Positions 5,244 through 60,766 of a stretch of 64,000 bases of DNA are shown here, in pieces (within the stretch, counting starts at the first letter, position 1; every line of letters begins with the position of its first letter). The notes below the pieces were generated by a model, which worked only from the letters and a program-made list of their open reading frames with translations, searched no databases and was not told the DNA's origin. Origin of the DNA: Dicyema japonicum (taxonomy: Eukaryota; Animalia; Dicyemida); NCBI GenBank assembly GCA_011109175.1, contig RDEW01000034.1, positions 455,556 through 519,555 on the forward strand, written 5' to 3'. The position numbers and the translations under genes were made by a program.

Positions 5244-6411
5244 CTATTTTTGAAATAATGACTTACTCCATTGTGAGTCTGCTTTCTTCAAATATATAAC
5301 CTATTCGTTTATCCACAATCTCCATCCATTCTTTCTGTAATTTGTTTTTCTTTTTGCTTTTCGGTTTTACTTTTAATTATAACTTTAATACCCTGACGAA
5401 GCATGTCTTCAGTTTTCCGTGCATTCACTTCTAGTTGGATTCTCAAATTGACAGTTTTTGTTATTTTATCATCAATCTCGTCGAGTTTAGTTTGATTATC
5501 CTTTAATAATTGACTTTGTTTGTTGGAATTATCCTCTTTTTGTCCTCTCCTTTCTTGTTGAGACATTGATGTTTCCTTAAACTCACATTATAAAATAAAC
5601 ATTTGATGACAGTTTTTCCATTTTTTTGGGCGGATCTGTGATTTCTGAGTTTTGTTCGAATTTCGCTCTCAGCATTTGAAATCTGGACTTTGAACTGAGA
5701 ATCTCTTGGCTATTGTTTTCACTTCCAACAGATTTTATTAACTCTGAGGGAAATATTCTTATGGTCCCGTCTTTTTCTTTTTTTACTGTAATGGATGGGA
5801 CGTCTGTTTTCTCAACACAAAGATTAGACACATTCCTGCATGTCCGATGTATTGAGAGTCCATCCTCCACATCCATTTCCAAAAGGTGAATCTTTTGTTT
5901 GCACTTTGAGCAAATCTTTTGTTCCAAGGTTGTCATTTTGTGGTTAACTTTGATTGTCTCCCGACTTCTACCCAAAGTCATATTATCCCCTTTTTTTGAT
6001 TTATTCAAAGGTGGAATGGGTCCTAAACATAATTATGTTATCACCAATAGGACTATTTATAAAATATTTGTAAAATTGCATTAAATATGTCATTATGCAC
6101 AATTTATCTGGATATGGCAGTATTACCATATCCTCGGGATCTAAAAATGCTGGAATTCCTAACTTCTTTTCGGCCACTGCAAAAGCAAGGTCATTGTTTT
6201 CATAAATATTCTCGGGATTCAAATTTCCAAAGTCTCTATGTATTATTATTTTTAACATTAAATCTGGTCTGAATCTATGTATTATGGCACAAAAAGCTCT
6301 CCCATCCTTCCACGACTTGTCTAGGTTTTTTATTTCAAGTCCTGGATATCCTGCACATACTTTTTTGGCCCACATTAACAATCCTTTAGAAGCCTTGGCT
6401 GTTGTCATCAT
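5244..6411 (-). CDS. CH domain + partial LIM + bMERB-like coiled-coil protein (MICAL-like/EHBP1-like); introns 6236-6256, 6023-6044, 5582-5600, 5370-5391, 5282-5300
   Basis: CH motif [22 protein letters not shown] (restored by a 21-nt GT-AG intron), CSKC-x16-HRTC, C-terminal LQKEWMEIVDKR; GT-AG introns join the ORFs in frame. Confidence 0.75.
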
Positions 6412-6459
6412 TTATTAAAATCTATTTGATTCTATTATATTATGCGGTTTTAATATTTG

Positions 6460-6790
6460 ATATCGGTAATACGTTTAACTCTGTGGTTATCAATATTCAA
6501 GGTCTTAAAGAAGAATCGAGTAGAGACCTAACAGTTTACAAGATCACATACGTAGTATCCAAGAGACTAAAGTAATGGAGGGAGTCCAGAAGAACTATGG
6601 AAATTTAGTCTTTTACTCCTAAACTCTGAATGCAAAGGGGCTTGGTTTGGCTATCCACAAAAGTCTTGATAAAAGAATATACAGAGTATGAAGAGTTAAT
6701 GACAAAATAGCTGTACTCCAGATAAAGACTGAGAAGCAATGGATATTTATTAATATGTCCTACTATGGTAAGGGTCTCTAAAAACATCAA
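6460..6790 (+). mobile_element. APE endonuclease remnant, RTE-like family
   Basis: GLGLAIHKSL...RVNDKIAVLQI resembles DRVAVLQI of the element at 24670-27850. Confidence 0.55.
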
Positions 6791-7139
6791 AGAATTTATT
6801 CAACATTAACTGACACTATCTTTTATCTCCAATCATGATATAACTGGAATACAAAGTCAAGAGGGTGAGAATATATCTGGAAAGTCAAATTGTGAGATAA
6901 AGAAAATAAAAAGAAAATATCAGGAAAATTGACGAACGTGTCTAATAAATTGAAAAGTTAAGATACGATGGTCAAATGTTCTATTTTGTTCGCCAAAGGT
7001 TATCCAACCTACAAATATTTTGTTAATAACAGGGAGTTTAATTGACAATAAAAAAAACAGATTATTTAGACCAATTCTGAAGACACTAGATCCTATCTTT
7101 GATTTTCCTCAACCGAATATCTCTTAAAGTCGAGAACTT

Positions 7140-7235
7140 TTTGACTCCGCGACGGAGCAGGTGCTCTGTGGATGTTTTCTGGTCTTACAGGTGGATTTGA
7201 GCCCAGTGTTAACTATACAAAACTGAATTCAAAAG
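7140..7235 (+). repeat. Dispersed LINE-derived repeat
   Basis: ctgtggatgttttctggtcttacaggtggatttgagcccagtgttaactatacaaaact nearly matches 3960-4020. Confidence 0.6.
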
Positions 7236-7619
7236 CCTGGAACTTGACATACATTTTTGTGTAGGTGACGGTAAAACAATCTGCGATTAAATTTAGATTA
7301 TTTTCTCTCCTTCTCTTACACCGACTTTCATGGGTATAAGTTTTATTCTATTACTCCGACTATTCCTTCTCAACTCTTTAAGATCTCAGTTAGGAACATC
7401 TCGCTGCATTACTTATGTTATTTTCCAGTGCTTCCGTCTCTGTCTCAAGCAATTTTGGTACAGATCTGCTCCAACTATTTACTGGGTTGTCTTGGCTTGT
7501 CTGTCAATTCCTCACAGGTTACTAGGGAGATGTCACCAAGTGACCCTACTTTCTTACCATCCACTTTATAATTTTTTTATTATTAATAGCAATGTCCGAC
7601 TTTTGCACTATGTTTAATA

Positions 7620-8040
7620 CACAGGCTGGAGAACCCGTGCTAATGACATTCAATGTGATAGGAATTGCGACCTCACTGCAAAGGACACAACTGACGGAGA
7701 CCTCACTCGTTATGAAATTTCTGTAGCCTGCCTTTAAAAAACCAAAGTGAAAAAAAGACTTGATGAAGTCGTGGGAGCATACAGAGTCATACTGCTAGAA
7801 CCAGAATGAAGACATTATCGACTTTATGCCAATACGATCCACAGATGCTGGAGTGTAAGTGACAGGATTTCTGTCATTCAACTGAAGTGGGCAAAACGCT
7901 GACTATCAACGCATATACTATGGGCTTAGAAATGAAATGTCCAGATGAAGTTGAAAATTTCTACACGGAACTCGCGATGACCATGGACGATATTCGTGCT
8001 TCCCCCTTCATCTCAAAAAATGAAACCGGATTGAATAATG
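7620..8040 (+). mobile_element. APE endonuclease remnant (RTE-like)
   Basis: LTINAYT...CPDEVENFY matches the RTE APE I+NxYAP...++FY pattern. Confidence 0.5.
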
Positions 8041-10280: not shown

Positions 10281-11087
10281 TTATTCACATTGAGTCTTGT
10301 GGTCCAGGATATCTTAGAACTTTGTATATATTTGTTGAAATTGGTCATAAACTTTATGATTGTATTTATTTCCGGTTATTGAAGACTTAGTGAGGATGGA
10401 AACATTTAATTTGAGACACACAATATTTTGATGATTTTATTAAACCATTATCTTTTGATATAATTATGATATCATCAGGGGGAGAGTTTTGTTAGTTGAG
10501 GACATATTCTTAAGTGATTGAAAAGTAGTGTAACTGATCTTAAGTATTCTCTTAATGAATTTTTATTTATTAATCCAAGGATTAAATTCTTTGGTAAGCC
10601 CAGACATCATAACTAATTTATCCAAATGAGAACGTCTGTTTGTGCTCACTAAACCCATCATCCAATATAGGCTTAAAAGAGGTAGAGAAATAGGTCCTAC
10701 CTCTTTCATTTTTGTCGCACATCCTACTGTCACTGACTTAACTTCATTCTTAGCGTACGAGTTTTCATAATGATAATCTTACCACTGGGAGAAGGTAGGA
10801 AGATCCTTTTCAACAACTGTGTTACCAGAAGGGCTCGTCACCTCACGGGTGTGATTTTTTTGATTCCACGGAAAGATAATGTTTTTTGTGACGAAAGAGT
10901 GGAAGTATTTTTATTGATGATTTCTTCCATTGGAGTTTATTAGGAATTCGTTCGTGACGTAGGTGGAAAATACAAAGGCCATTGAAGAACTATGTGTTAT
11001 CGTTGGTGGTCGAACCTTGTTTGTTGTGTGAAGAGTGAGAGTTGTATGGTTGTATGAGAAAAAATAATAATAAAGAGAATAATGTTT

Positions 11088-11965
11088 ATTAAACTTTAGT
11101 CCATAAGCAGAAAGACGATTATGTTTATGTGGTTTATGAGTAGTATTGTTAGAATATAATGATTGGAATACATGTTTCTTAAATTTAGAATTATTTTTGT
11201 TGATATAGTTATTGTCGTATTGTAATATCTTGTTAAGAGGTGCCCATTGATTTAATTCTTTGTTATTAGCCATTAATATTTCATCCAAGGATAGTCCGTA
11301 GTCAGATGGTGCAACCTCTCTATAAACAAATTTATCATGAGGAGGTATAATATCTACCATTTTATCATTTTTTATTTTATCTCTCCTGACTGCTCGTTTA
11401 CTGAAATAATCATAAACATCCTATTATTAATAAATAATATTACTTTGTCTGTATTTTGTTTGCTTTACTGTTTTTATTACATTCTTTTGTTTATTTTTCT
11501 TTTTGTTTTTCTTTATTACTCTCACTGACTCTATATTCCTTGGATATGATTTTATCTAATAATTATTACATTATACCTTATCTACTATACATATTCACTA
11601 TCCTCCAACAAATATTTTCTATTTAACATATAATCTCTCATAAACTTATCACTCTCATCAACACTATATATTTCATTACTCCTTTCTTTTACTTTTATTA
11701 ATTCATCATCACTCTCTTCGTTTATTAATGACTTTATATTCTCTCTCACTTTACTATCATTATCATTATATATCACTAAGGAATCCTCTCCTTTTAATAC
11801 GTATTCTCTATTCATATCCTTTATAAACAATCCCTTTCTTGACTTTTTTGAATACAAGTCCATACAATCTTCCATTAAATAACGTGCATTATCATCTTCT
11901 GACGTTGAATCAGTATTACTCACTTCCTCTTCCATTACTTTCTTTAACTTTTTCACATTTGACAT
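11088..11965 (-). CDS. KRI1: KRI1 homologue (40S biogenesis); introns 11556-11576 and 11421-11443; one frame break near 11590; 3' end approximate
   Basis: DKFMRDYMLNRKY, SYPRNIESVR, Kri1_C-type FVYREVAPSDYGLSLDEILMANNKELNQWAPL, terminal RLSAYGL. Confidence 0.8.
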
Positions 11966-12664
11966 CACCACAAAGCACGATTATATTTATTATTTTATTT
12001 ATTAAATAAAATTTTATTTAGTTTTTCTTAATAAGAAATTACAAGTCAAGCTTTCAGAGGACAGGTTATATTAAATACAATCGTCTTTCAGAAATATTCC
12101 CACAAGGATTCTGTAATCTCTGATGCTGTTAAATCTACTCATTAACCAGCCCTACTCATTAATCCTTTTGTTTAGGTTGACAAATAGTTGGAACGAGACA
12201 TGAGGAACCAAATTTGATATAGAGCCATTTTTCGGAGTCCTATCTGAACAGAATCAGACAATAAGTCCTCTCCACTTGTCCATAATGCTTTCTTAAGCAA
12301 AATATGGGCTAACTCTTCACCCTAATGATAATGTCCTGCCATGTTGGTTTCTTGTAGGTATTCTTGTGTTTTTAATGGGTTATTTATGATTGTCAAAGAG
12401 CCATTCAGGATTTCGTTTGTTATGGAGTCTCAATCGCAATGAGGATTATTTGGGCACACAATGCGGATGAATCATGTCGTTCCTGCTTACAATATTATGA
12501 AATCATTTAGAGAGAAGTCACGAACAACCTATCATCAATAATGAATATCGATCAATAATTTCTGTAACATTGTCATCCTCTAAAATGCTCTTCACTTACG
12601 AAGAGATGACCAACCATTTAAGGTCCGGTATATAGTCGGTCCATATTGATAGGAGAATGAAGGG

Positions 12665-13049: not shown

Positions 13050-14100
13050 GGTAACTCCCAGGGTTTTCTGATATTTGTTTTTCGGGATATTCTTCCCATC
13101 CAGTCAATTGATACTTTCCCTAGTCTTCTGTTTGTCGTGAATAGTTCTCCAGGCTAGCAGTCAATTGATTTTCCCAAAGCCATAAACTTAGTTTATTCAG
13201 ATTGTCCTGTTTTCTTCTTGTTGTATCGGTAATACTCACATCCCTCTAAGCAATGACAATATCATCAGCATACGTTAATAATTTGTCATCGTCCCCTGTG
13301 GGAGTGGCAAGTCATTCATCATAAGGTTAAACAAGAGGGGAGATAACGGGGAGCCCTGAGAACGCCATTTGCTAATAGTCTCGATACGGAACATTGATTG
13401 CCACAGTGTACTCGTCCTCGTCGACTACTCAAGAAATTTCCCAACCATAATTTCAGGTTTGTGTCAATGTTCGAAGAATATATTTTGTTGATAATCTTTT
13501 TTGAAACAGAGTCAAAAGCCTTCTGGATATCAATTGATCATACAATCGCCTTTTTCTGTCCTGGTCTTTTGTTAAGGCCATCTGTTATGAACTCCTTTAA
13601 TGTATTTAGGTCTGATAGTATCGTCCCTCTTTGAAACCATGCTGAAATCTGGCATCTGGGAGGGAATGTTATGTGAGTGTCATAATCATCCTTTCTAGGA
13701 TTCTTGTCTGGACGCACAAGAGCGACAAAGGCCTGTAAGAAGCCGGGTCCTCCCTTGGTTTCCCAAGCTTCAGTATTGGATGAATATTCGAAAGTTCATA
13801 GCGGGAATACAGTTGAAGTTGATTGAGTAGTTGAAGATGCATGTTTGTGCTGATACGCCAGTGTGCCCATCTTTTTCAACAGAATGTGTGTTCTTTGTTC
13901 GATAGATCTCCAAAGCGACATCTCTCGGTAGAACATAAATTGTTGGATGCCTCCTTTTCGGTTTCAGTTTTTTGTGTGGAGGAATATCCATCCTTTGGAA
14001 TGGTTTGTGGCTTATTTCACACAATGTTTGATAAATTTATTCACATCCATCTCCTGTTCACGATCTCCCTCGATATTGTTTGACATTTCGCAGCATCCTC
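13050..14100 (-). mobile_element. Degenerate LINE reverse transcriptase
   Basis: Minus strand gives a G..QGSPLSPLLFNL segment and YADDIVIA. Confidence 0.75.
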
Positions 14101-14189
14101 TACATCTTGGTAAGTGAACTATTTTTTCATTGCACTAGAAATTCGGCCCAGTTTTGTTTTTTGGAGAAATTTCGTCTTTCGTTGATCTT

Positions 14190-14289
14190 AATGGTTGAAT
14201 ATTAAATGTGTACTTTTTATTGTTAAATAAAGTGGGGTTAAATTATAAAATTGTATATTTTGTAATAATAATTTAAATATATTAATAAG
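14190..14289 (+). promoter_or_regulatory. AT-rich upstream segment, putative core promoter
   Basis: Nearly GC-free 60-100 nt before the ATG; similar tracts precede RPS9 (27960-28041), UBA1 (45200-45313) and KRI1 (11975-12030). Confidence 0.35.
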
Positions 14290-16215
14290 ATGGTGCTTGA
14301 ACGAGAGTTGGGATTAGTGAATGGAGTATCCGGTCCTGTAGTAATAGCTACAAATATGAAAGGGGCTGCAATGTATGAATTGGTGAGAGTGGGACATGGT
14401 AAGTTAGTGGGAGAAATAATAAGATTGGATGGAGATACAGCGACAATTCAAGTATATGAAGAGACAGGTATAAATAAAAAGTGAATAAAAGCTGGTTTGA
14501 CGAGAAATGACCCAGTGTTCTGTACAGGGAAGCCTCTAAGTGTAGAACTTGGTCCAGGAATAATAGGAAGTATATATGATGGAATTCAAAGACCATTAAA
14601 AGCAATATCGGACATAACGAAAGATATATACATACCACGTGGAGTGACAGTGAATGCATTGGAGGTAGTGAAGAGTGGGAATACATTCCAAGGAATATTA
14701 AAGTTGGTGATCTTGTGTGTGGTGGAGATATAATTGGTGAAGTGAATGAGAGCAGTTTAGTAAAGCACAGGGTGATGCTTCCTCCAAATGCGCAAGGAAG
14801 GGTAACATATGTGTGTGAATATGGGAATTACAGAATATGTGATTCAGTAATAGAAATAGAGTTTGGGGATAGAAAGAAGGAGTACAGTATGGTTCAGACG
14901 TGGCCTGTTCGTCAACCAAGACCAGTTAGTGATAAATTGGATGCTAATTATCCTCTGTTTACTGGTCAAAGAGTATTGGATGCACTATTCCCTTGTGTAC
15001 AGGGTGGAACTACTGCTATACCTGGTGCCTTTGGATGTGGAAAGACTGTTATATCTCAATCCTTGTCAAAATACTCAAACTCTGATGTTATTGTGTATGT
15101 TGGATGTGGTGAACGGGGTAATGAAATGTCAGAAGTACTAAGAGACTTCCCTGAATTGACTATTGAAGTTGATGGGAAGGCTGAATCCATTATGAGACGT
15201 ACTCTATTAGTGGCCAATACATCAAATATGCCTGTTGCTGCCAGAGAGGCGTCTATTTACACTGGTTGTATTAATAATTATATTTTTGGGCATCACTCTC
15301 GCTGAGTACTTTAGAGATATGGGATACAATGTCGCCATGATGGCTGATTCTACTTCTAGATGGGCTGAGGCTCTTAGAGAAATTTCTGGAAGATTAGCTG
15401 AAATGCCTGCTGACTCGGGATATCCCGCATATCTAGGATCACGTTTAGCTTCATTCTATGAAAGAGCCGGACGAGCCAGATGTATTGGATCTCCTCAAAG
15501 AGTTGGTTCTGTTAGCATTGTCGGGGCGTTTGTATTTGTTTAACTGTAGTGTATCTCCCCCTGGTGGTGATTTTGCTGACCCAGTTACCACTGCTACTTT
15601 AGGAATAGTACAAGTTTTCTGGGGATTGGACAAACCATTGGCTCAAAGAAAACACTTTCCAGCCATTAATTGGTTGAATAGCTACAGCAAGTACATTCTC
15701 ATTCTCGAAGAGTTTTATGAAATCAATTACCCAGAGTTTGTTGCTCTCAGGAATAAGACTAAAATGATACTACAAAATGAGGAGGATCTCACTGAGGTTG
15801 TTCAGTTGGTTGGTAAGGTTATTTCCTTCTCCATTCTTTTTAGAGCTCTTTGGCTGAGTTTTGATAAACTCACTATGGAACTTGCTAAGATTATTAAGGA
15901 AGACTTTTTACAACAAAATAGTTATTCTGCCTATGACCGATTCTGTCCCTTCTTCAAAACTGTTGCAATGCTAAAGAATATTATACTTCTCTACGATTTG
16001 GCCTCTAAGGCTATTCTTACACAAAAGATTACTTGGAATAATATCAGAGATTCTCTTAATAGGGATGACATCATTGTCGATATCTCCAATTCTAAATTTA
16101 AGGTTATTTCTCTTTTTTATTATTGAATCCTTCCGAATTGACTGAATACCAAATTAAGACAGAATTGGATCAACTATCTGACAGAATTATTAACTGCTTT
16201 AACAATATCGACTAA
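14290..16215 (+). CDS. ATP6V1A: V-type H+-ATPase catalytic subunit A, about 601 aa; introns 14468-14491, 15265-15289, 15528-15549, 15818-15843, 16103-16125; frame breaks near 14665 and 15860
   Basis: [18 protein letters not shown]-loop [40 protein letters not shown]. Confidence 0.97.
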
Positions 16216-16773
16216 TATTTGTGGTCATTGGTTATTAATATTTTGTGGTTTAATTTTCTCCTTACAGTTTAATTCTAACTATACTTTTTCTTACACATTT
16301 TTGTTGGGAGACATATTCTCAACACATGTTCCACTCCTAGAATGGAACGATTGTTTATCCATCCGATCGCTTTCCGTCTCTCAATTCTCCCACACTTCTT
16401 TTGCAAGAGAGGGTGTTATGTCCGTAAATATCAACCAACGATGAGCCCGGCATCCAGACGGATAAAGATCCCGATACGGAGTGTCTTGTGCGTCCCAATG
16501 TTTCCAATCGGGAAAGCATCAATCCTTTACACCTCCCAGCGATCAGACAGTCGATGTTGATTCATATTTTTGAATAGTTTTTTTTAAATTTATCTTCACA
16601 TATAGTCTTTTCGTTTCATCTTGGTTTCCGATTTCTCGTCAATTCTTGCTGCTAAGCTTCTCTATACTCCGTTTCAATTGTAGACGATTCATAGGGAAAT
16701 TAAGAATCATCTTGACCAACGGTTGGTTGAAGTATAGAGAGAAATATGGGGCGTGCTATAAATGTCGGGGAAT

Positions 16774-44129: not shown

Positions 44130-44205
44130 CCCTTTAGTTCTGGGATCACTTATAAAACATTCTTTCTCTTTTAACCCAATGTTCCTGGGGCAATAATAAA
44201 TACAG
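44130..44205 (+). repeat. LINE 3' tail remnant (hairpin + TAA)
   Basis: CTGGGATCACTTA...TTCTTTCTC...CCCAATGTTCCTGGG-AATAATAAA. Confidence 0.65.
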
Positions 44206-48300: not shown

Positions 48301-48366
48301 TCACCAATTGATGGAGACTACGACCTTGATCTTCCCTATATTAATTATAAAGTTCACAGGAATTAA
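45314..48366 (+). CDS. UBA1: Ubiquitin-activating enzyme E1, about 928 aa; 12 introns of 21-25 nt; one frame break near 47079
   Basis: [53 protein letters not shown], catalytic [20 protein letters not shown]; introns 45370-45394, 45564-45585, 45828-45849, 46065-46088, 46394-46415, 46587-46607, 46761-46782, 46946-46968, 47393-47414, 47490-47510, 47802-47823, 48201-48221. Confidence 0.97.
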
Positions 48367-48759
48367 TTTCTTTTCCCTTTATTCACTCTAGTCATCAATA
48401 ACCACAATCTGTTGATACACATGTTCTTCTGTAGTTAAGTACAAAACACTACCTCTTATATAATCCTGGTGGTGTCGTTTGTTTTGAAATTTATCAAGGA
48501 CTGTTTGGAAAAGTTCTATATATTTGGCTACTTCATTTGCATGCAAAATAGGTAAGAAAAAATCTCTTGCTGAACAAAGTTCTCGCTCGGCCGACAGAAT
48601 TCCTGACGCGAGGAGCTTTTTATTAAATTAGAAGCAACAATAAATATACCTCATGATTGAAGACTCCCGATTAAGGAAATTCATAATAAGTATATTAATC
48701 GGAAGATTACTAAACACAGTTGTGACATAACACACTGTATGCTGTTCAATGCGAAAGGT

Positions 48760-49900
48760 CATTAACTAGCTCCTTTCATCAGAGAATTGCGGGCAATTGT
48801 CAAATCAAAGGAAATTATGAGCGCATGCAACAAACTAAAGAATCACAGGGACGCTGAACCGGATAGTATCTTCCTGAACTGCTGAAATATAGACATATAA
48901 GTTTCTTCGAAACCATTGCGACATTATTTAATAGAATGTTTAAATCTAACTCAATCCTACTCCTGGGAAAAAGGGATATTGATACTTATGGATGTCCTAC
49001 ATCAATATGTGGATTAATCGTTGCAAAGGAATATCCGAGTACTGCTCTCTAGTACTGAACTCTAATCGCCACTCCTCAGGGAGATTCTCTCCCTTAATAT
49101 TTGTGATATATCTTAAACCCGCACTAAAACATCCAAAAACGTGTTACGAAGAAAAAATAGAAGTCGTGTACGCGGATGATGTGGATTTTATATCCGAGGA
49201 TACAGAAGCTCTCTTACATCTACTGAAAAATATACCGGAAAATTTTTGGTGAATGGTTCCTAATCGTAAACTGGGACAAACCCGAAATAACCGAAATCAA
49301 AAAAATGGAAATCATTCTTGATGAAGTTGCCGACATGTTAATAAGATTGGATCCCTACTGGGGACACAGAAGACATCAAATGGAAAACATTTGCAGGAGT
49401 AGCAATGGAAAATTTCAAAAAGTGATGTCTGAAAGGACTTGATGTTAATCTACGGATGTTTAATGCATTTGTGAAACCAATACTCACATATAATGCTGGT
49501 ACTTTGGCCTATTCGATTGCGGAATATTCCTAGACAGCATAGAGTGTTATTTTTCATACATTGGCTTGCAAGGATCTCGAACTGGAATTCTAAAAATGCA
49601 AGAGTAGGCCTCTAAGCCTGGACATGACTGACGCCCGGTGGAGACTGTTTGAAGACATCCTGCGTATGTATCCCGCTGCCCTAGCGAATGTGGCGACGGA
49701 AGATCACTTTATGTTCGATGGGAAATGCTTCCGTGGCCGATCAAGAATAACAAGCCCTATCATACTCGCAAAGACTTCCACAGAATGAGGAAATACCCAA
49801 AGAAGGGAGACAATCTGGATGAGATCGATTGTATGTAACCGTGAAGAATGGAATAACATTGTTATACTATAACCATTATGGCAAGGAGATAAGTGTTTAT
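48760..49900 (+). mobile_element. Degenerate RTE-like LINE RT
   Basis: FSPLIFVIYL, VVYADDVDFI, RWRLF...FRGRSR; same family as 24670-27850. Confidence 0.75.
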
Positions 49901-50149
49901 AATAATTATGAATCCTTAGAAACAAAGTACTAGTCTAAATACAAAAATCGAATTAATTTTGTTCCTTCAAATATTTGAAAAAGGGGTTTGACTTAGTGGA
50001 CTACAACTTCCTAAAGGATATATTAATGAATTCTGGTTCCCCATTACAGAATTTGTATTTTTGACCATTCAAAATTGGAGAGTTAAACTTGAAAAAAGAA
50101 TTTGGAATGTCAAATAGGGGTATACTTTAAGGAGATTCACCATCCATAC

Positions 50150-50560
50150 TTATTTGTGTTGGTGATTGGCCACCACTTGTATGCCCAACTTATATAAATT
50201 GATGACGAAATGTTTTAACAGGAAATTTAGTTATTTCGTTGAAACATGGATCCTCTAAACAGGCTGTAGAGTGGAAAATACCCAAAAGTGTATATTAGTC
50301 AACTCTTGCCACGAGTCATTTGCTTTTTATGGATGATTTGAAAATATAATCTCAAGAATATATAACAATTATTAGGATTATGGAAGACATTTAAGTATTT
50401 TTTAAATGGACTTGAGAATAACACTGACAAGACAGCTACTAATCTATAATGTTAGGCACATATGAAGCTGAATGCAGGGAATATATTCAAACAATAAATG
50501 AATACGCACTCTAACTTTGCTATATTGGACCGATCAACATTGAGTTTGAGGATGTCAAGG
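50150..50560 (+). mobile_element. R4-like RT remnant
   Basis: CMPNLYKLMTKC and HLLFMDDLKI. Confidence 0.55.
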
Positions 50561-50833
50561 TTTATTGTATTCTCTGAAACCCGCGAGGAAAGAAAGGCCT
50601 TCCCAGAGATAAACATCAGTTGTATTCAAAAGTGAATATTTAAATTTCCCCATGATTAGGAGAGAAAATCTATTTTGTGTCTAAGGAAAGCTTTAATTCA
50701 AGAATGGGGAGGATCGCATGATTCCTAGCGTATAATCTGAATTATTAAAAAGTTCAAACTGATTGGTTATTAAAAATAATTATTATGGCTAAAAGATGGG
50801 AGATGTGTAAATGTAAACAGATTATTAAAAAAG

Positions 50834-51890
50834 TTAATGAATATTATGGCATTTGTGTCCAAATTTACATTTACCAGCCAAATAGAATGAACAAACATGA
50901 TTTTGTTTATATAATTGAATATATGTGGGAATATAAGGAATATTCTAAATATAATAAAATATAAACATTTGGAATATAATATGTTGGTTTATATGGAATA
51001 TCTATTACTTCATTTAATGGAATTATAGGACATTGTTTAGATGATATTTCAATAATATAGGGATCACTTGGGGAGAATATGTTTGGAGTACATTCTACTT
51101 CATTCTCTTTAACATATTCTTTACTAATAACTCCTTCTATAAGTTGTGGTGTTGTCCAATAATTCCCCAATTCATGAGTGGGTACTTTAAACTCACGAAC
51201 ATCCTCCAATTGTTGAGCCCATGTAACTGCTTTAGTAGGTTTTACTGGTGGACTATTCAATTTAGGTAACTTTGGTTGAACGTGAGGAGTAAATTTATGT
51301 CGTTTAATGCCAAACTGTTGTAAATCAAATCCTTCCCTAAAATGTGCCTGTTTGAGAAGAGTTTTCCATTTATGAACAATATGAGCAGCCAATAGTGAAA
51401 TATCTAAATATAAAGGACAAATACCCTTATCTCCTTTAATAAGTGATTTAATTAATTTAGGTGAATTATTATCCTTTAATAGTGATATATTAACAGGTAT
51501 ATGCTTGTATATTACAAGTAATACTCTCATTAAATCATCACATTTGCATTCATTTAGTAATTTGTTTAGTACTCCCCATATCTTTTCAGACAAACTCCTA
51601 CAACTCTATTATTATTTATTACTTTAATATATCCATTCTACTTGTCCTTAATATTATTTCACACACAAAACATATTGTAAAAACATCACCTCCCTTTAAC
51701 AATCTTAATTATCTCTCATTATACTTTGATATTCCAATACATGATTCAACATCTATTATCTCTCCTTTATTATTTACCAAACGTGTGCATTCCCTTAATA
51801 TTCCCACTATATTACTTGGAAATACTACAAGTGATTTAAATACTCTTTCATTCGCTGAGTCTAATACTATCTTTACACTAACTAACCAAT
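50834..51890 (-). CDS. PPP1R10: PP1 nuclear targeting subunit (PNUTS), miniaturised; at least 5 tiny introns (e.g. 51404-51424, 50945-50966); start approximate
   Basis: TFIIS-N-like region ending IVHKWK, RVxF-type KAVTW, SPSDP...IIPLNE, and terminal CCCH finger CSFYLAGKCKFGHKCHNIH after splicing. Confidence 0.8.
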
Positions 51891-52589
51891 CATCAATATT
51901 ATTATTATTATATTTATTTTTTATTTTATAATTTAATATAATATATTTTACGATTCATCATCTATACAGTACATATATGCCAAAATAAATATTCTTCAGA
52001 AGACGGCTTAATTATCCCAACCTGGAGCGATATCACTCACAAAACCTACAATTAGAGAAACACTTGAAATCTATAACGTGCTATTTAACTATCCCTATTA
52101 AGCATCTATACCTGAAGATGAAGATCCTTACATCGGGTGATCACTCGAAATGCTGAATTTATAATATTTCCAATGATCATTTGAGTCTAATTATCTAACC
52201 TTACCATCTCCTATGACAGTAAACACGTCTAGGATTCTCATTTACCTCCATTTACCAAAAACCGAACTTGGAAAGAATTCACGACATTATATCCACCTGT
52301 AACACGAATGCCCTTGAAAACGGTAAAATAATCGGGGACTGGATAAAAAAGGTTTTTGCCATGAATCACCATTGTTCTTCAATGAATAAATACTCCAAAA
52401 TTTAGGAAACCACTAACAAAATCGTCAAATCTAACTCCGAGTCTATTACTCTTGAAGCATTCCTACTTGAAAACAGCTCCCTTTACGTCATTTTTATCAT
52501 TAACCTCCAAAATAACCCGATATATGAAAAGACATGAGTCTGTTGTGGAGGGCGTTTCAAGGTCACCATCCCAACCGATTTCGACGTCC

Positions 52590-52670
52590 CACTTATCGGT
52601 CTAAGATCACTTAGTTAGGTGGGACATTCTTTCTCTTTAACCCAGTGGTCGTGGGGCAATAATAATGAAT
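52590..52670 (+). repeat. LINE 3' tail remnant
   Basis: GATCACTTAGTTAG...TTCTTTCTC...CCCAGTGGTCGTGGG-AATAATAAT. Confidence 0.65.
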
Positions 52671-54287
52671 CACCAGGACTCAAAATAAAATTGGAGGATC
52701 TATGAGAGGACCTAACATAACTGAATAATCCACAATGGTTGCCAGCTTCCTACATAACCTTTAGTTGACAATTTAATAGAGCAAATAATTAATGTAATTG
52801 TCTGTTAAAATACAGTGGTGTGGGTTTATTAAGTATGACGTTGCCACAATGAGTTTGGCTCTGTGTTTTCCTATTGATTAAACACATCAATTTTACGGTT
52901 ATGATGTAACACTCCACTCTTTAAATTAATTTACATAAAAATTAATGACAGACATATCTGATGTTTTGTTATTCTGTACTCTTTTTGGATAGTTATATTT
53001 TCAGCAATTGTATAGACATGAATGAATACAACGAAACCAATGTTGAACACGTTCCCATCATTGTCAATTGATTCCCACTGGAACAGGACGCCCCTCGGCA
53101 TGGGATATCAATCCGTCTCGGGATCTAACTGTGCCTGCTTCATCCATTTCGTTGTGGACTGCAAAAAACTTCACTTGCTATCTTCCCGTTCCTGAGGCGT
53201 GCAGCTATCACTGGGGTTGTGAAGCGCTCTCTTGAGACGACTGAATTCCCATTGTCTCTGGAACCGATGGGCCTGGATCGTTGAGATGGAAAGCGCCCGA
53301 TGGGGTAACTATCTTCCCCTTCTCTCGGGGGAGTGCTTGATTTGGGATGGGGCCTACTGGTTTCGCATTTAAAGCTGAGGAGGCTGCTCGGACTTTCGAG
53401 AATTTCAAGATAAAAAATAAGCCAGCCTCTCCACAAGATTCCATGTACAGCCCGTTTTTGTCGAGACGAATGGAGTCTTCGGGCCCAAGACGACTTCTTT
53501 TCTAAGATCGTTTGGGTCAATGATTTCGAAAGTGAGTAATGAGCGTCGGGAAACCGAATGGTTGTTCCAAAAGATTTCTTTGGCAGTTGTCAAGGAAAAC
53601 AGGCATTCCATCCTATGGATTATTTAGATTGTCTTGTTACGTAATAAATTGTTTAAATGCGTGTACTGTTTGCTTAATGTTTATGATAATAATGCTTTAT
53701 TTACATAAAATGTAAAGAGGGTATATTGGAGCCTTTTTATTTTATCTCCTGGGCGAGGAAATTTCGTCTAAGGAGGATTACGTTAATGAGATGTGAATAA
53801 CTTTATAAAATTATACACGAAATTTTCACACAATGAGCACAGGAAGTCAGACGTACTCTTATCACGCAAAAAACTGAAAAGAGTGTCAGATATCGGAGAA
53901 GGATCTGAAGGATACACTACATTTCACAAGAACAACATTCTCTCACCGACTTGATAACATTCGAGTCATCCTATTAAATAATCTTGGAAACGTGGGAGTT
54001 ACCTTCCTAACGTCGATCTTCAACTATTCGATTAATTAAATGTGATACCGTTAATCTGGAAACAGGCACATATTCGGCAAATACTAAAACCTGGAAGACC
54101 AAAAGACGACCCATCGTCATTTATACTTGGAGAGGCTTGTAATCAGGGGAATAAAAGAGTTCTTACCAGATAGGCCTTTTCAGCATTGATTCATGAATGA
54201 GAGATCCACGTCTACATACAAACATTGACCGACTTTATTCGAGATGGATTTGCAAATAAGCCGAGATACTTGAAAACAGTTCTCTAT

Positions 54288-57200
54288 TTATTTTATAACC
54301 CCGGGAACACCGAGAAAGAAAGACAAAAGAGTCAAACAGTTAGGTGATCCCAGTCCTCGCAATCAATTGTGCCATTCGACGTCTGTGATCTTCCATTGTC
54401 CCCACTACTTTCCGGAAGAGCCTTCTCTCGGTCTTGCAGAGGAATCCGATCGGGGAGGGGAATTTCTTATCCAATCGGTTTTCTCTTGCCATGGAAAGGA
54501 TCAGGCGAAGCGGATTTCCATCTTCCTCACAGACGCGAAGAAATCCGGAGCCACGACTACGGATCTTAGCTTCCATGAGTAGTGGGTCGACTGTTGATCC
54601 ATTACGTGGGCAAAGCATACTGATTGTTTTCCTGGTGTATCGAGTTGACTCTTTGGACCATGACTCCGATAGCGCGAATCTCCATGCAACGGAGGCATAC
54701 TCAACGGCAGGCGCGATTGTTTGTTGGTAGAGGGTAGAAACGGAAAAGTCCATGTTCCTCGTGGTCCTCCGGACAAGGGCGCGTAAAACGTTAATTTTCT
54801 GGAGGCCCCTGGTAATCATGTCTTTTGCGTGGGAGTTGAAATTGAGTAGACTGTCGTACTTGACTCCAAGGACAGTGGGGGACCTTGTCACTGGAATCCG
54901 AGTGGGACCAATAAAGATACTCGGTTCATCCTTGGAACGACGGTCCGAAGTGAAAGTGAACAGATGGACTTGGTTGCAGAAATCGTAAGTCGATTGCCAA
55001 CAATCCAATCGTGGAGAGTGTTCAATTTTGTCTGAGTTTTAAGGGATGCGACTTGCGTCGAGCGGTTCCGTATTACAATGACTACATCGTCTGCGTAGGA
55101 TAATAGCAGGGAATCTTCGTCTCCATCATTAGGTAGGTCGTGTAGGAATAGGTTGAATAGAATTGGTGAAAGTGGAGACCCTTGGGGTACCCCGTTCGGT
55201 AGTAATCGTGATCTAGATCTGAGATCACCACTGACTACTCTTCCACGTCTTCCAGACAAAAAGTTGGCCAGCCATAATTTCACATTCGGACGAATATTAG
55301 TAGAAAATATTTTTCCAACCAGGATTTTCCTCGAAACAGTGTCAAAGGCTTTGTTGATGTCAATAGAAACCAAGTTGTGCGTTTGTGAGGCGGGGATGGG
55401 TGTTAAAATCATCGGCAATGAACTGCGATAAAGTTGCCAAGTATGTAGCGGTGGACCTACCGCGGAGGAAACCATGTTGAAATATAGGACGCGGAAGATA
55501 CGGAATAATGACTGATAATACAAGTTTCTCCATAATTTTTGACAGTGTGCTGGTAACGGAAATAGGCCTGTAGGATGCAGGTTCTGTCTCTGGTTTCCCA
55601 GCCTTCAATATCGGTCTGATGATAGAATTCTTCTAAATCTTGGGAATAATATTATAGTTAATAGACAGGTTGTATATATGCGTGAGGTAGCCAATTGCGT
55701 AGTGGCTTAGGTGTTTTGGTGAATAGAAGATACTTTGTCAGGCCCGCACGCCCGTGAGCTCTTTAATCTGGTGATCACATCCAAGACTTGGTCATCTGTG
55801 AATAGTTCGTGGTAAGGTTCCTTCTTCGGTTTATGGGCACGTACCTTAATGTCCAGGTGTTTCGAGAATGGTTTGAAGCTAATTCCATCGTAATGTTTCA
55901 TAAGGGTGTTAGGATGTAGGTGGCATAAGTGTTCAGGAGAAGACTTTCCGGTTCCGTCTGCATCATCCAGCTCCAACTTGACTTGTTTAAGAGTTTTCCA
56001 GAAATGTCGGGATGTACTTTTCCTGTCGAGGTGGTTAACTAGATGCTGCCATCTCTTGTCCTTGTGTTCTTTTATGCTCTGACAGATCCTTTTATTCAGT
56101 TGTCTGAGGGCTGTCAAAGACTTCATGTCCAACAGATGGCATCTCTTCAGCCGGTCTCTTTGTTTTATAAGACTTATTGTATAAGAGCTGAGGGTAGGAA
56201 TAAACTTCTTGTATGACGATATAGGAATAAAAATATGGTCAGCTTTCTGAATGGCAGCGCTGATAATTTCTGCGGCTCATCAATAGAGCGTATTGGGAGG
56301 ATAATCTCCGGGTCAAGAATTTATCCACAAGGTTACTGAAACCAGACCAGTCAACCTTCGTATAATCCTTGAATCTTTTTGATTCCGCCGGCCGTTCCTG
56401 TATCGTCGAAGACCTCTCAGTTTTAGAAGGATTGGATTGTGGTCACTGGAGAAGCCGTAAAAGACGTTCCAGGAAATAAGTCCAGCCAGAGAAGGTGCGA
56501 TAGTGTTAAGTCGAGGGATGTGCAGCTATCAGTCATCCTTAATGGGGTCCTCGTATGTGAGTTAGGGTTGTTCAGTATAATCAGGTCAGGAAGATAATTT
56601 GCAATGAGTTCTCCTCGGTTATCAGAGGATTGGGAAGTGAGCCAAACTGGATGTCGTGCATTAAGATACCCACATAACAGTAGATTTTTCAATGTTGAAT
56701 TGCGTGATAAATCAGGGGTGTAAGATGACGGAACAAGATCCTTGTGGAGGAATATATATTAGCCAAATGGATCCAAAAGGACGGGAATAACTCCATTTTG
56801 ACAGTAATCTGCTCCAAAGTCTTGTCGGAGCCAAGAAGCTCTGAGGTTCGTTGAGTTGTATCCATAAAAGGAATATCGTTCTTTATAATAGTAAGTAGTC
56901 CTCCTCCGCGTCCTCCTGACGATCTTTACGGATCACTGTGTATCCGGGAAAAGAGGGTGTTGGTATGGAGGGAGATAGCTTGGACTCCTGTATTAAAGCG
57001 AGGTCAGCCTCATTTTCGCGGAGGAGTGCCCGGAGTTCAAAGATTTTCTTCCTGATCCCATTCGTATTCAGTTGTATAATTGTAAAACCTTTCCATAGAC
57101 CAGGATTGGTTTCGACGTCTCCACATAGAAGAATCAAAAGTCTGGATAAATGGGGACACCAGACAGGGTCGAAGACACAGGAGATGAAAGGACCATCGGA

Positions 57201-58300: not shown

Positions 58301-59499
58301 ATTTAAATGTATGAATTGAAGACCTTATTTCCTCTCAACGGCTCTAATGGGTATTAGTATACAATCTTCGTCATCCTCTAAGCTTCATTCATTTGTTTTT
58401 GTATAGCAATTGCTGCTCTCCTTAACTTTTTCCAACAGTTAACCAATTTGGTGCTTGTTTTTTGAAAAAAATTTATTATCTCCCAAGACTATAAATAAAA
58501 GAAGGAATCACGTTCTTGTTTGTAGAAAATATAAATTTACGTCAAATTTAAGTTTCCTCATACAGAGGAGTGCCTCTCAAAAACAAAACCCAACTATTTT
58601 AAAGTCAACATGATTGGCTCCACACAAAGAGCATATCTACTAAAATTTAATTTGTTTTTTTGTCGAAAAGTTTGAGCCCCTGTGAGATACTAACTCCTGA
58701 TTTATTTCATTGTCAGCATATATTAACAGTCTTGTAGACATTTAGGAAGAGGGAAGGTTTTTATGATAATAATAAAGAGCAGAGGGCTGAGAATATACCT
58801 TTGTTGGACTCCTCTCTTTATTTCTACTTCATTGTAAGGTAGCGTACATGTCTCGCATAGGAGTTCCCCTTGCACAAGTATCCCCTAATCCAATTCATCA
58901 ATTCTAGCGAGATTACGTCCTTATGACTCATGATTCAAAACGTTTAGACATAATAAATTCAAGAGGCACTTGGAATTCTTGTCCTTAGCTATCTGTGAAC
59001 TGAAGTGAACAAAAAATCTAATTCAGGAAAAAAAATTCCTGAATTCAGGAAAAACCAAATTGATGCTCTTCCACCAACTTTGAAATTTTTTTGAAAATAA
59101 TTAGTTCAATTTTCTTCGATGTTGAGCATATGAGTCGGTTTTTAACAACATTACGCACCACATTATGCATCATTACGCAACAGTTATTCGCACTTTCCTG
59201 GATAGCACAAACAAAATACCCGAAACCTTTTCCTAGGTAGAGTAGGAAACACACGCTCGGAAGACACGACGCGACTGATTTAAAAAAAATATGTTTACCC
59301 CGTCCCAGCTAGAACATCAGGGATTACCTTCCTTCCTACGTGCCATTGGATTGTTGACAACCATAATGGGAGTTGATTAAGGATAAATCCATACAAATGG
59401 TAAGGGAGAATGGGCTCTCAATAATGAGGACTACTTAGTAATTTATGACACTTAGAAATTTAATAAATCATTCCGTGATAAGCACGTGAACACATCGAA

Positions 59500-59950
59500 G
59501 GTTACTCCATGATGTTTTGGGATTTGAAGGGAATATTGATGTTGTCCGTCTTCCCAGTCTTTTGTCAGAAAATGAACAAATAGACTATACTGGTCAAGTT
59601 GATGGTCAGTCGTTTTTTGTTAAACATGTGGTCTATTAAAGTGATTATGTATTGAAGGACTGAATGTCACGAGGGCAGGAAGATGTCATCAGTATGATAT
59701 TGTTTTCATTTCGTAGTATATGAACAAAAAATAGATATCGACGATCCCTTCGAACAAAACATTTAAGTAAAAGTTAATAAACTTTGGATCAATAATTAGA
59801 GCACTTGGGTGTCTATTGACCAAAGCCTCGAGGAGCGTCGGGAAACCGAGTGGCTTTTCCAAAGGATATCCCTGGCAGTAGTCAGAGGTAACAGTTACTC
59901 GATCATATCCGCTGGACTTTAGAACGATTTTATTGTTATAAATAAATTTC

Positions 59951-59952
<2 letters not shown>
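59500..59952 (-). mobile_element. Possible Penelope-like RT remnant
   Basis: Weak GYPLEKPLG (GxPMGSPLS-like) and TDDIF motifs only. Confidence 0.2.
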
Positions 59953-59982
<30 letters not shown>

Positions 59983-60331
59983 TTAGTAACTAAGCAACAG
60001 AATAGTTAAATGCACTCCCTCGTTACGCATAAGTATATGAATACTTAGGGTTCTACTTGTTCCTTGCACTTCACTATCCGTTCTAACAGTTTTCTACATG
60101 TAACTTCTTTCCTAAGGTCGCTGTTCTCATTTTCCCATCAATATGAGCATACTATTGATCCAGAGAGGAAGCCTGGTTCTCTATCGTCCACCAAAGCCCC
60201 CAGTTAAAAAATCCTCGATAATGAGGTTAATAGTGTCAGCATGCGAACAGTTGACATAATGTCTAAGAGAATGAAAATATCTAACTTAATAAATCAATAA
60301 AGTCCTATTAGAAATATTAATCAATAACTAA

Positions 60332-60766
60332 TTAAGGTTTCTCACCACGTATTCTACGGGCAAGTTGTATATCTGAGACCATAATTGTAACACGTTTGGC
60401 ATGAATAGCACACATATTAGTGTCCTCAAACAAACTCACTAAAAAGGCCTCACAGGCTTCCTAACACTTAGTGTAACTTAGAACCTGAAGAGCACCAATT
60501 GCTGTACTTTGAAAACGAAGATCAGTTTTGTAGTGCTGAGCAGTCTCTCTCACAAGTCTTTGAAAGGGGAGTTTACGGATAAGCAGATCTGTGCTCTTCT
60601 GATATCTACGGATCTCCTTCATTGCCAGTGCTCCAGGGCGGTAGCGACGAATTCGTTTCAAACCAGCAGAAGAAGTAGCACTCTTACGGGCCGTCTTTAC
60701 TGACAGTTGCTTTCTTGGTACTTTCGCTCCTGATGACTTTCGTGCTGTATGTTTCGTTCGAGCCAT
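60332..60766 (-). CDS. H3: Divergent histone H3 (H3.3-like), 136 aa, one 24-nt intron at 60461-60484
   Basis: MARTK...RYRPG...[20 protein letters not shown]; splicing restores [27 protein letters not shown]. Confidence 0.97.

Follow-up and report, generated by a model that had tools for sequence, protein, structure and literature searches.

The 64,000-nt window of Dicyema japonicum DNA analyzed here raises the question of what process can reverse the strand composition of a gene halfway along its length. On the coding strand of the host genes, the first half is rich in G and A and the second half in C and T, silent sites and introns included. This mid-gene skew flip is real and exceeds its preliminary description, whose six tallies of G and C per 60 nt were all recovered exactly on recount. 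On the + strand, UBA1 carries G21:C2 at 45421-45480 and G2:C14 at 48241-48300, KRI1 carries G11:C1 at 11041-11100 and G2:C15 at 11701-11760, and the PNUTS-like gene carries G14:C2 at 50761-50820 and G2:C13 at 51721-51780. The + strand is G-rich and then C-rich across each unit, regardless of which strand is coding. In 300-nt windows, its skew reaches +0.67 in the 5' part of UBA1 and −0.81 in the 5' part of KRI1. An absolute skew of at least 0.4 occurs in 24 such windows, 23 of which fall inside five host genes, and one of at least 0.5 occurs in 12, while shuffles within 3-kb blocks give expectations of 0.74 and 0.04, respectively. None of the dicyemid papers located mentions skew.

Polarity along individual host genes

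Nine host genes were compared at neutral sites, defined as fourfold-degenerate sites together with intron interiors. UBA1, on the + strand, has E1 domains in its first half and E1_UFD in its second (Pfam on exons). From 44970 to 46720, an interval comprising the 5' flank, the 5' UTR and the first half of the gene, the coding strand is rich in G and in purines (G396:C139, GC skew +0.48, AT skew +0.09); exon skews run +0.51, +0.63, +0.67, +0.40 and +0.24 in order, and introns 1-3 (45564-46088) contain no C. From 46730 to 48470, the second half with about 100 nt of 3' UTR, the same strand is rich in C and in pyrimidines (G210:C306, skew −0.19), with exon skews of −0.14, −0.26, −0.14, −0.41, +0.22 and −0.26 and an intron at 46946-46968 composed of G2 C3 A3 T15. 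Across the switch, neutral sites go from G17:C1 to G13:C41 (p=0.0002).

Two genes on the − strand present the mirror image on the + strand and the same polarity on their own. The 5' part of KRI1 with its upstream flank (11390-12100) has G42:C138 on the + strand (skew −0.53), making the coding strand G-rich and nearly C-free; the gene's first quarter has G39:C1 at codon position 1. The 3' part, which holds the Kri1_C domain in the exon at 11016-11390 (Pfam), and the 3' flank (10800-11250) have G103:C44 (skew +0.40), a C-rich and G-poor coding strand, and neutral sites shift from G18:C1 to G2:C5 (p=0.01). The PNUTS-like gene has G119:C240 on the + strand across its 5' part and upstream sequence (51300-52500; skew −0.34), where its introns contain no C and the coding strand is G-rich, and G105:C65 across its 3' part and 3' UTR (50550-51150; skew +0.24), where the coding strand is C-rich. 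Its neutral sites are G11:C0 and then G1:C6 (p=0.0006). The polarity first described for this gene stands. Its naming as PNUTS is tentative and comes from a weak Atlas lead to TFIIS-N / PPP1R10 clusters, with scores of 0.77-0.83.

V-ATPase subunit A (14100-16450, + strand; ATP-synt_ab domains by Pfam) had been described as weakly polarized, which is wrong. Its overall skew passes from G-rich (+0.38 at 14100-15200) to neutral or C-rich (−0.01 at 15201-16450), and its neutral sites go from G41:C5 to G9:C27 (p=0.0002), with the switch at 0.49 of the gene and the strongest trend of purine content with position among the host genes (rho −0.42). The same polarity had been ascribed by eye to the F-BAR, RPS9 and GYF genes, and the first two bear it out. 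The F-BAR/SH3 gene (18300-20400, − strand; SH3 match by Pfam) has + strand skews of −0.37 at 18851-20400 and +0.18 at 18300-18850, with a coding strand that is mostly G-rich and becomes C-rich at the 3' end. The first ten of its thirteen introns, all 19-26 nt long, have at most one C and the last three have at least as much C as G; its neutral sites change from G33:C10 to G0:C11 (p=0.0006). RPS9 (27950-28750, + strand), identified by motifs in its translation, has the polarity of the other host genes in weaker form (+0.21, then −0.11), with neutral sites of G7:C1 followed by G2:C10 (p=0.008). The GYF-domain gene (40473-41134, + strand), whose Pfam match lies under the curated cut-off, has a weak trend (rho −0.16, p=0.06), and the CH-domain gene (5046-6411, − strand; CH domain by Pfam) shares its sign without significance (rho −0.07, change-point p=0.79). 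The ninth member of the set is a histone-fold gene on the − strand (Pfam on exons); like the GYF and CH-domain genes, it is not individually significant in the change-point test.

Neutral sites and coding consequences

Pooled over the nine genes, coding-strand GC skew at neutral sites runs from start to stop as +0.70, +0.59, +0.68, +0.16, −0.22, −0.27, −0.50 and −0.59, and AT skew flips alongside it from +0.36 to −0.15. Fourfold sites have G80:C35 and A274:T147 in 5' halves and G32:C78 and A194:T237 in 3' halves (Fisher p ~1e-9 each). Intron interiors, which had been said to share the skew, do so with G65:C9 in 5' halves and G18:C27 in 3' halves; the difference between halves has p from 1e-7 to 1e-9 for fourfold sites and intron interiors separately. 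The correlation of purine content with position is negative in all nine genes, at p < 1e-3 in six, and permutation likewise makes six of the nine significant. The profile, strongest for G versus C, is approximately antisymmetric and crosses zero close to the middle of genes that are 0.6-3 kb long; a linear gradient was indistinguishable from a step. This near-antisymmetry at neutral sites places the cause in the class first proposed, a process that works on nucleic acid at the scale of the gene.

Fourfold sites, the introns of 19-26 nt and the short UTRs all carry the skew, which also upholds the earlier argument that selection on protein cannot explain it. Lys and Glu, two residues with purine codons, are abundant in KRI1 and PNUTS-type proteins, so that charged N-termini combined with an unrelated C-terminal composition, or chance, might have produced an artefact. 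The effect, however, is equal or greater at fourfold sites and in introns, conserved globular enzymes such as UBA1 and V-ATPase A are affected too, the block shuffle yields 0.74 windows at the 0.4 level where 24 are seen, and independent short-read contigs agree with the window sequence. The neutral-site tests refute this explanation, whose probability is negligible.

The proteins themselves carry the imprint. Serine codons AGY:TCN change from 50:79 in first halves to 27:103 in second halves, and leucine codons TTR:CTN from 115:50 to 87:88. N-terminal halves are enriched in Gly (1.9-fold), Val, Cys and Met and C-terminal halves in Gln (2.2-fold), Tyr, His and Phe. We read the bias as having the strength to change which synonymous codon family is used and to alter amino-acid composition between protein halves.

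Limits of the skewed domain

The purine-to-pyrimidine gradient on the coding strand of host genes is limited to the transcription unit, with its flip near mid-gene. The skewed domain begins about 200 nt upstream of the ATG, where the promoter has an AT-rich block, and extends about 100 nt past the stop. The earlier statement that flanks follow the skew holds over about 200-400 nt upstream and about 100 nt downstream and fails farther out, where skew is near zero with no mirrored sign. Two reverse-transcriptase ORFs in the window, both RVT_1 by Pfam, served as controls and lack the flip of the host genes. At neutral sites, no inversion appears in the R4-type non-LTR retrotransposon ORF (32281-35681, + strand; rho +0.12, change-point p=0.99), where none had been obvious by eye, or in the second ORF (54180-55533, − strand; rho +0.07, p=0.23, change-point p=0.58). 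A transcription-linked cause is favored by the match to the transcription unit and by flanks that are flat rather than mirrored. The flanking DNA is mostly of TE origin, however, and its youth may have kept it from recording a process that reaches beyond the genes; sequence age could then account for part of this apparent match.

These limits bear on replication as a cause. If both ends of a gene lay in open chromatin and served as initiation sites, with forks meeting mid-gene, differing leading- and lagging-strand errors could yield the antisymmetric neutral profile with its central zero crossing in genes of 0.6-3 kb, and a + strand that is G-rich and then C-rich irrespective of the coding strand. 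Replication skew domains of bacterial chromosomes and mammalian N-domains likewise pass from positive to negative + strand skew per unit and rise between units in any gene orientation, but they span hundreds of kilobases or more, whereas the units here span 1-3 kb and would need origins at that spacing. Beyond an origin the skew should take the mirrored sign, which the flanks do not show, for example at 44250-44900 upstream of UBA1, where GC is low and skew flat, and the convergent UBA1 and PNUTS-like genes have two full skew cycles between them rather than one. Furthermore, G co-varies with A here, whereas in the replication skews reported for mammals G is paired with T on the same strand. 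Replication is thus quite an unlikely source.

Recombination, which ranks as less likely still, meets the same difficulty at the flanks. Double-strand breaks in nucleosome-free regions at both gene ends would be resected 5', leaving 3' single-stranded tails whose purines might be oxidized, or depurinated with A inserted opposite, the damage then being fixed. The geometry would fit: rightward of a break it is the − strand that is left single, and its purine loss would render the + strand purine-rich, with the mirror image at the other end. The scale of about 1 kb seen here is similar to that of resection tracts, and the predicted transversions toward A and T are in line with the composition. 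The model nevertheless predicts mirrored skew beyond gene ends, which is not observed, and the amplitude demands very frequent breaks at every gene.

The preliminary description also raised gene-sized DNA units, in which at least some cells would hold genes as linear or circular excised molecules, resected at their ends or replicated from them, as in ciliate nanochromosomes. Dicyemids are said to eliminate and amplify somatic DNA. The gene-sized macronuclear chromosomes of Nyctotherus ovalis, and also of Sterkiella, have a symmetric subtelomeric purine skew (PMC2633312), so that each strand is purine-rich at its 5' start and the coding strand finishes poor in G and rich in pyrimidines. The analogy holds in form and fails in extent, since the ciliate skew lies within ~70-130 nt of telomeres and its 3' pyrimidine skew stays outside the coding region (PMC2633312), while in the present genes the reversal takes in about half the length. 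To the extent that contigs can show it, the Dicyema DNA is chromosomal. In a check of one island, UBA1, based on assembler contigs rather than raw reads, contigs from three DNA libraries run across the 5' edge (44834-45668 and 44834-45884) and the switch point, with no loose ends or junction reads at the island edges. Contig depth is even over UBA1 and its 5' flank, without a copy-number step, and falls to about 0.55-0.65x in the 3' flank, where the haplotypes come apart at heterozygous SNPs and a 15-nt indel. The window contains no telomere-type repeats. Bridged edges, even depth and the lack of free ends and telomere repeats leave gene-sized units unsupported and highly improbable.

A proposed transcription-anchored mutation bias and its precedents

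The explanation favored here, at about an even chance, is a very strong strand-asymmetric mutation bias, near equilibrium and anchored at both ends of the transcription unit. What is directly observed is the pattern and its limits, the fact that neutral sites have it and TE ORFs do not, and the lack of a DNA copy-number step; from this we infer a mutational origin, a coupling to transcription and a type of substitution. In the first ~1 kb after the start, the non-template strand would shed pyrimidines, C above all, or, seen from the other side, the template strand would shed purines, G above all. Toward the 3' end, an asymmetry of the same kind would act on the opposite strand; this reversal could stem from antisense initiation at the gene 3' end or, alternatively, from a differing mutation and repair regime late in transcription. 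Because GC and AT skew flip together purine-ward, the dominant change would have to be a pyrimidine-to-purine transversion (from C or T to A or G) rather than C-to-T deamination, a deduction from composition that assumes equilibrium and does not draw on polarized substitutions. A constant flux of sense transcription alone leaves the mid-gene flip unexplained, and the AT-rich block present at promoters is absent from 3' flanks; both observations weigh against this explanation, whose scope is nine genes in one window.

The closest precedent comes from unicellular fungi, whose genes have opposite GC skews at their two ends, at fourfold sites and in UTRs, tied to mutation regimes of transcription phases (PMC3315797). 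Both systems share a sign change of coding-strand GC skew along the gene, extending to promoter and UTR regions, amino-acid usage that differs between gene ends, assignment to the transcription unit, and GC and AT skews that depart from the prediction for C-to-T deamination, which furnishes a shared argument against it. The differences are equally clear. Fungal genes favor C at the 5' end and G at the 3' end, whereas Dicyema genes are G-rich and then C-rich, and fungal AT skew is flat along genes, whereas here it flips with GC skew. Fungal skews are described as weak to moderate, with 33% of genes individually significant in C. albicans, the strongest of three model yeasts analyzed per gene (PMC3315797); here skew reaches about ±0.6-0.7 at neutral sites, with six of nine genes significant. 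The present host is also an animal, and its 19-26 nt introns share the skew. The Dicyema pattern points to a strand-specific mutation bias of unusual strength, tied to the gene as a unit.

For the fungal pattern, McLean and Tirosh put forward an adaptive model based on NTP supply (PMC3315797), and selection on RNA or transcription may be considered here as well. A pre-mRNA with a C-poor, purine-rich first half and a G-poor, pyrimidine-rich second half might be favored for the stability of RNA:DNA hybrids (R-loops), for polymerase pacing with unequal NTP pools, or for locally unstructured RNA, local G-C pairing being presumably impossible in a purine-only or pyrimidine-only neighborhood. The domain does match the transcription unit, UTRs and introns included. 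Such selection does not require a mid-gene flip, however, since a uniformly purine-rich transcript would do as well, and its strength per silent site would need to be high in an animal of small effective population. The 19-26 nt introns, moreover, have the strongest skew (their G65:C9 in 5' halves) and yet are removed. Selection of this type is accordingly unlikely.

Mammals, with their transcription-associated strand asymmetry, offer another comparison; their coding strand is G-biased near the transcription start (PMC3315797). As in mammalian promoter-proximal skew, G exceeds C on the coding strand from near the transcription start, most strongly in the first ~1 kb. Mammalian promoters with this property are R-loop-prone CpG-island promoters, their coding-strand G excess is paired with a T excess, and their skew at gene ends keeps the sign it has at the 5' side; here, in contrast, an excess of G over C goes with an excess of A over T, and the 3' half shows the reverse. 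The mammalian amplitude is many times smaller than that of these dicyemid genes.

Skew reversal along host genes

The preliminary description of this DNA held that host genes are G-rich in the 5' part of the coding strand and C-rich in the 3' part. Its six 60-nt hand counts were all reproduced exactly, and the polarity does track the coding strand, running from G-rich to C-rich in + and - genes alike. In 300-nt windows the GC skew of the + strand peaks at +0.67 in the 5' part of UBA1 (45345-48366, +) and at -0.81 in the 5' part of KRI1 (about 10911-11965, -). Absolute skew of at least 0.4 is reached in 24 windows, against 0.74 expected from shuffles inside 3-kb blocks, and 23 of these fall in KRI1, V-ATPase A (14290-16126, +), the F-BAR/SH3 gene (18556-20238, -), UBA1, and a PNUTS-like gene (50834-51893, -), all of which, read along the + strand, start G-rich and end C-rich. 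Two full skew cycles lie between the convergent promoters of UBA1 and the PNUTS-like gene. The sole extreme window outside these five genes lies in a transposable element (TE) at 1-1350, where a C-rich tail (900-1350, skew about -0.4) follows a non-LTR retrotransposon ORF represented by its 3' part (114-892, +, YADD motif); TE 3' tails can therefore be locally skewed as well.

Spliced gene models were built with a small dynamic-programming finder allowing introns of 18-30 nt at a higher penalty, and were retained only where single exons had Pfam or motif support. An intron setting of 17-60 nt in an earlier spliced-ORF finder strung spurious ORFs together and was rejected. The resulting dataset comprises nine genes from one 64-kb window, with self-built models in which some splice sites are imperfect. 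Besides V-ATPase A and UBA1 (Pfam), KRI1 (Pfam Kri1_C), F-BAR/SH3 (Pfam SH3), and the PNUTS-like gene, for which there is a weak Atlas lead only, it holds a CH-domain gene (5046-6411, -, Pfam), RPS9 (28042-28648, +, motifs), a GYF gene (40473-41134, +, Pfam, below cut-off), and a histone-fold gene (60332-60943, -, Pfam). Two reverse-transcriptase (RT) ORFs with Pfam RVT_1 matches, at 32281-35681 (+) and 54180-55533 (-), served as controls. The G+C content of 36% and the spliceosomal introns of about 19-26 nt match the figures published for Dicyema japonicum, namely a GC of 36.7% and ultra-short introns similar in size to those of myxobolid myxozoans, whose medians are 22 bp. Published heterozygosity is about 1.24%, and the same paper describes a directional RNA library (PMC6736024).

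Individual models carry features of their own. The F-BAR/SH3 model requires microexons of 12 nt and 10 nt between introns of 22-24 nt (18766-18855). UBA1 lacks one base at 47076-47077 relative to the reads: a T or C is inserted there in all three DNA libraries and restores the conserved E1 frame (TESYSS...). The missing base splits the frame and may be an assembly indel or a polymorphism. Searching for further loci of this genome or other dicyemids with the ORF of the last UBA1 exon gave no exact match, and a homology search with that exon returned identities of at most 59%, none from the Dicyema japonicum genome or a close relative. The search for other loci of the PNUTS-like exon was likewise without a match. 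Orthologues of V-ATPase A among 50%-identity representatives are mostly fragments, intein-bearing or archaeal-type proteins, a set underpowered for polarising amino-acid substitutions.

The flip is present both at fourfold-degenerate sites and in intron interiors, which excludes an effect of protein sequence; the preliminary description had argued that protein selection alone cannot account for it. Pooled over the nine host genes, fourfold sites shift from G80:C35 and A274:T147 in the 5' halves to G32:C78 and A194:T237 in the 3' halves (Fisher p about 1e-9 for each pair). Intron interiors, counted with GT and AG excluded, shift from G65:C9 and A207:T162 to G18:C27 and A136:T189. When these neutral sites are divided into eight bins of relative position, GC skew runs +0.70, +0.59, +0.68, +0.16, -0.22, -0.27, -0.50, -0.59 and AT skew +0.36, +0.23, +0.19, +0.02, -0.15, -0.16, -0.10, -0.15. 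Position correlates negatively with purine content at neutral sites in all nine genes, with p < 1e-3 in six. A permutation change-point test is significant in six of the nine (p <= 0.01), with the flip falling between 0.27 and 0.78 of gene length (mean near 0.5), and every significant gene has G bias on the 5' side of its coding strand and C bias on the 3' side. The reversed 3' domain takes in about 1.7 kb of coding sequence in UBA1, and in most genes about half the length.

Neither control ORF shows the flip. The R4-type non-LTR retrotransposon ORF, where it had already been noted as not obvious, gives a change-point p of 0.99, and the second RT ORF a p of 0.58. V-ATPase A had been called weakly polar, which applies only when all sites are counted: at neutral sites it has the strongest trend of position against purine content of any gene (rho -0.42; G41:C5, then G9:C27). 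At its constrained positions the bias is hidden by the conservation of the protein. Counted over all sites, profiles seem polar, the 5' domain being longer and stronger; neutral-site composition is nearly mirror-image between gene halves, and the purine-to-pyrimidine profile is nearly antisymmetric. The all-site polarity may be largely the usual coding-strand purine excess superimposed on an almost antisymmetric neutral-site signal. A step and a linear gradient differ little by AIC, and in both directions.

Extent of the skewed domain

Cumulative walks over all sites, taken with 1 kb of flank, placed the domain limits only noisily, and extent was taken instead from the neutral-site analysis and from a metagene in which the ATG and stop codon of the nine genes were the anchor points. 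Relative to the ATG, the skew of the coding strand is near zero from -1000 to -500, turns positive from about -200, stands at +0.31 in the very AT-rich block from -100 to 0, and holds +0.23 to +0.41 across about 600 nt. In the first 100 nt past the stop it is -0.33, negative in eight of the nine genes, and beyond this it returns to about zero (about -0.05 in the downstream flanks). In the 100 nt upstream, most host genes have a near-pure A/T block (for example 45210-45290, 20240-20340, and 40380-40470) with a GC of about 0.18, A-rich on the coding strand and containing AATAAATAA-type repeats and TATA-like words. No comparable A-rich, nearly G+C-free block was found past gene 3' ends. Given these limits and a promoter block at the 5' side only, the skewed domain, with bounds measured against ATG and stop, looks like a transcription unit with short UTRs. 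As in transcription-coupled strand asymmetry, the skew is oriented by the coding strand in + and - genes, and its limits fit ATG and stop plus short UTRs.

The flanks bear directly on two other explanations. Replication forks converging inside each gene, or resection from breaks at both gene ends, would each reproduce the symmetry, and each predicts flanks of mirrored sign. Mirrored sign was not found in the aligned flanks of the nine genes, which are flat, unlike the borders of replication skew domains; these flanks are largely young TE sequence and may be too young to record the process, a caveat that applies to the transcription-unit fit as well. Converging forks would further need origins at the two ends of each gene of 1-3 kb, and we regard them as unlikely. 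Break-resection needs hotspots at those same ends, and is very unlikely.

A third proposal, that the genes exist as gene-sized DNA units, finds no support in contigs of four public runs compared over 44700-50699, a contig-level view of one island, that of UBA1. The 5' edge of the island is bridged by contigs 44834-45668 and 44834-45884, and the point of sign change by contigs 45639-48227, 45855-48394, and 45054-47987 (three DNA libraries from one sample). Going from the 5' flank into the gene, depth stays even (705-880 against 860, 50-74 against 48, and 58-74 against 66), and no loose ends or junctions occur at the island edges in these contigs. Telomere-type repeats are absent from the 64-kb window. 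Directly 3' of UBA1 depth falls to about 0.55-0.65x, and at 48700-48900 a cluster of heterozygous SNPs with a 15-nt indel (48789) stands at about half depth; the fall looks like haplotype splitting in a heterozygous sample rather than a copy-number step. In ciliate nanochromosomes, as in Dicyema, both strands have a purine skew at their 5' end (PMC2633312). They differ, as far as the UBA1 contigs show, in being telomere-capped, gene-sized molecules; they differ also in confining the skew to a stretch of about 70-130 nt next to the telomeres, and in having the 3' pyrimidine skew outside the coding region (PMC2633312).

Repeats were seen around this island. The only common edge motif of UBA1 and the PNUTS-like gene is a TE-like direct repeat of about 43 nt at 44157-44199 and 52624-52665, about 90% identical, whose copies lie 8.47 kb apart, flank the block of both genes, and are probably ends or fragments from one repeat family. 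Between the two genes, 49100-49700 is a very high-copy repeat with many loose ends around it, at a contig word depth of 28,700-79,600 in run X2 against about 860 in the unique gene (about 33-93x). Run X5 (2017, 12 million letters) holds of UBA1 only a 150-nt exon piece (45395-45545) at a depth of 170-600 in both orientations, and otherwise thin coverage over repeats.

Precedents and possible processes

Neutral-site GC skews as large as about +/-0.6-0.7 are familiar in mitochondria and some bacteria and are not known from animal nuclear genes, and a within-gene sign flip is known only from yeasts, in a weak form with opposite polarity. The literature searched contains no mention of GC skew in dicyemids; skew is mentioned neither in the Dicyema japonicum genome paper, which is also silent on asymmetry and codon usage, nor in the ultra-short-intron paper. 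The nearest precedent is the gene-end GC skew of unicellular fungi, which changes sign along genes and extends to fourfold sites, UTRs, and amino-acid usage (PMC3315797). Dicyema resembles these fungi in that coding-strand skew reverses from 5' to 3' (+0.70 to -0.59, six of nine genes significant), is present at fourfold sites, and reaches into promoter and UTR, from about 200 nt before the ATG to about 100 nt past the stop. Yet fungal genes are C-biased 5' and G-biased 3', the opposite order, and their AT skew is roughly uniform and positive (PMC3315797), while that of Dicyema neutral sites goes from +0.36 to -0.15. The amplitude also differs, and Dicyema is an animal whose tiny introns bear the skew.

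The joint flip of GC and AT skews toward purine argues against excess C-to-T change, which would give opposite signs, an argument also made for fungi by McLean and Tirosh (PMC3315797). If composition is taken to be at mutation equilibrium, an excess of both purines on one strand requires asymmetric pyrimidine-to-purine transversions there, which is equivalent to purine loss on the partner. A neutral-site G:C ratio near 5 implies a roughly five-fold difference in the rate of C loss between strands. Such a difference far exceeds the known nuclear asymmetries of transcription and replication and is nearer mitochondrial values.

The best-supported class of explanation is a transcription-anchored cause, in which a regime close to the 5' end is mirrored by another toward the 3' end; it is favored because the skew fits the transcription unit and the flanks are not mirrored. 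The 3' regime could arise from antisense initiation at gene 3' ends, or, as has been suggested for fungi, from a different state of polymerase and repair over the late part of the gene (PMC3315797). A more specific reading, doubtful but worth stating, is that a lineage-specific, gene-autonomous mutational regime pushes nuclear genes to mitochondrion-like asymmetry, with C disappearing from the coding strand of the 5' half about five times as fast as from the template strand, and the reverse in the 3' half. In one possible loop, purine-rich nascent RNA would form stable hybrids with the template and shield its lesions from repair, making the coding strand yet more purine-rich, and the hybrid-free 3' half would drift the opposite way. 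Alternatively, each gene might be its own replication or break-repair unit. Were such a gene-autonomous regime real, the amino-acid make-up of N- and C-terminal regions would be reshaped proteome-wide in an animal.

Codons, proteins, and use as a marker

Codon choice shifts along the genes. Ser AGY:TCN goes from 50:79 in 5' halves to 27:103 in 3' halves (p = 0.002), and Leu TTR:CTN from 115:50 to 87:88 (p = 0.0003). Amino acids shift in the same direction as the codon bias: N-terminal halves are enriched in Gly (1.87-fold), Cys (1.97-fold), Met (1.53-fold), and Val (1.48-fold), and C-terminal halves in Gln, His, Tyr, and Phe (N/C ratios 0.46, 0.63, 0.64, and 0.70). Selection on RNA composition is a possible cause, but it gives no reason for the sign flip. 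If the cause is mutational, dicyemids are a natural system in which to separate 5'-proximal from 3'-proximal mutation regimes of transcription, or to study gene-scale replication or repair, and the pattern shows the reach of mutation bias alone over codon choice and protein composition.

The skew will bias codon-usage, dN/dS, and phylogenetic analyses of the long-branch dicyemids. It can also serve as a marker of gene strand, gene extent, and host versus TE status in the Dicyema genome. Upstream of the F-BAR gene, 20550-23400 carries one more + to - cycle of skew, about 2.9 kb long, with a GC of 0.30-0.38 and no verified gene; a - strand gene that has escaped recognition, or a non-coding transcript, may lie there.
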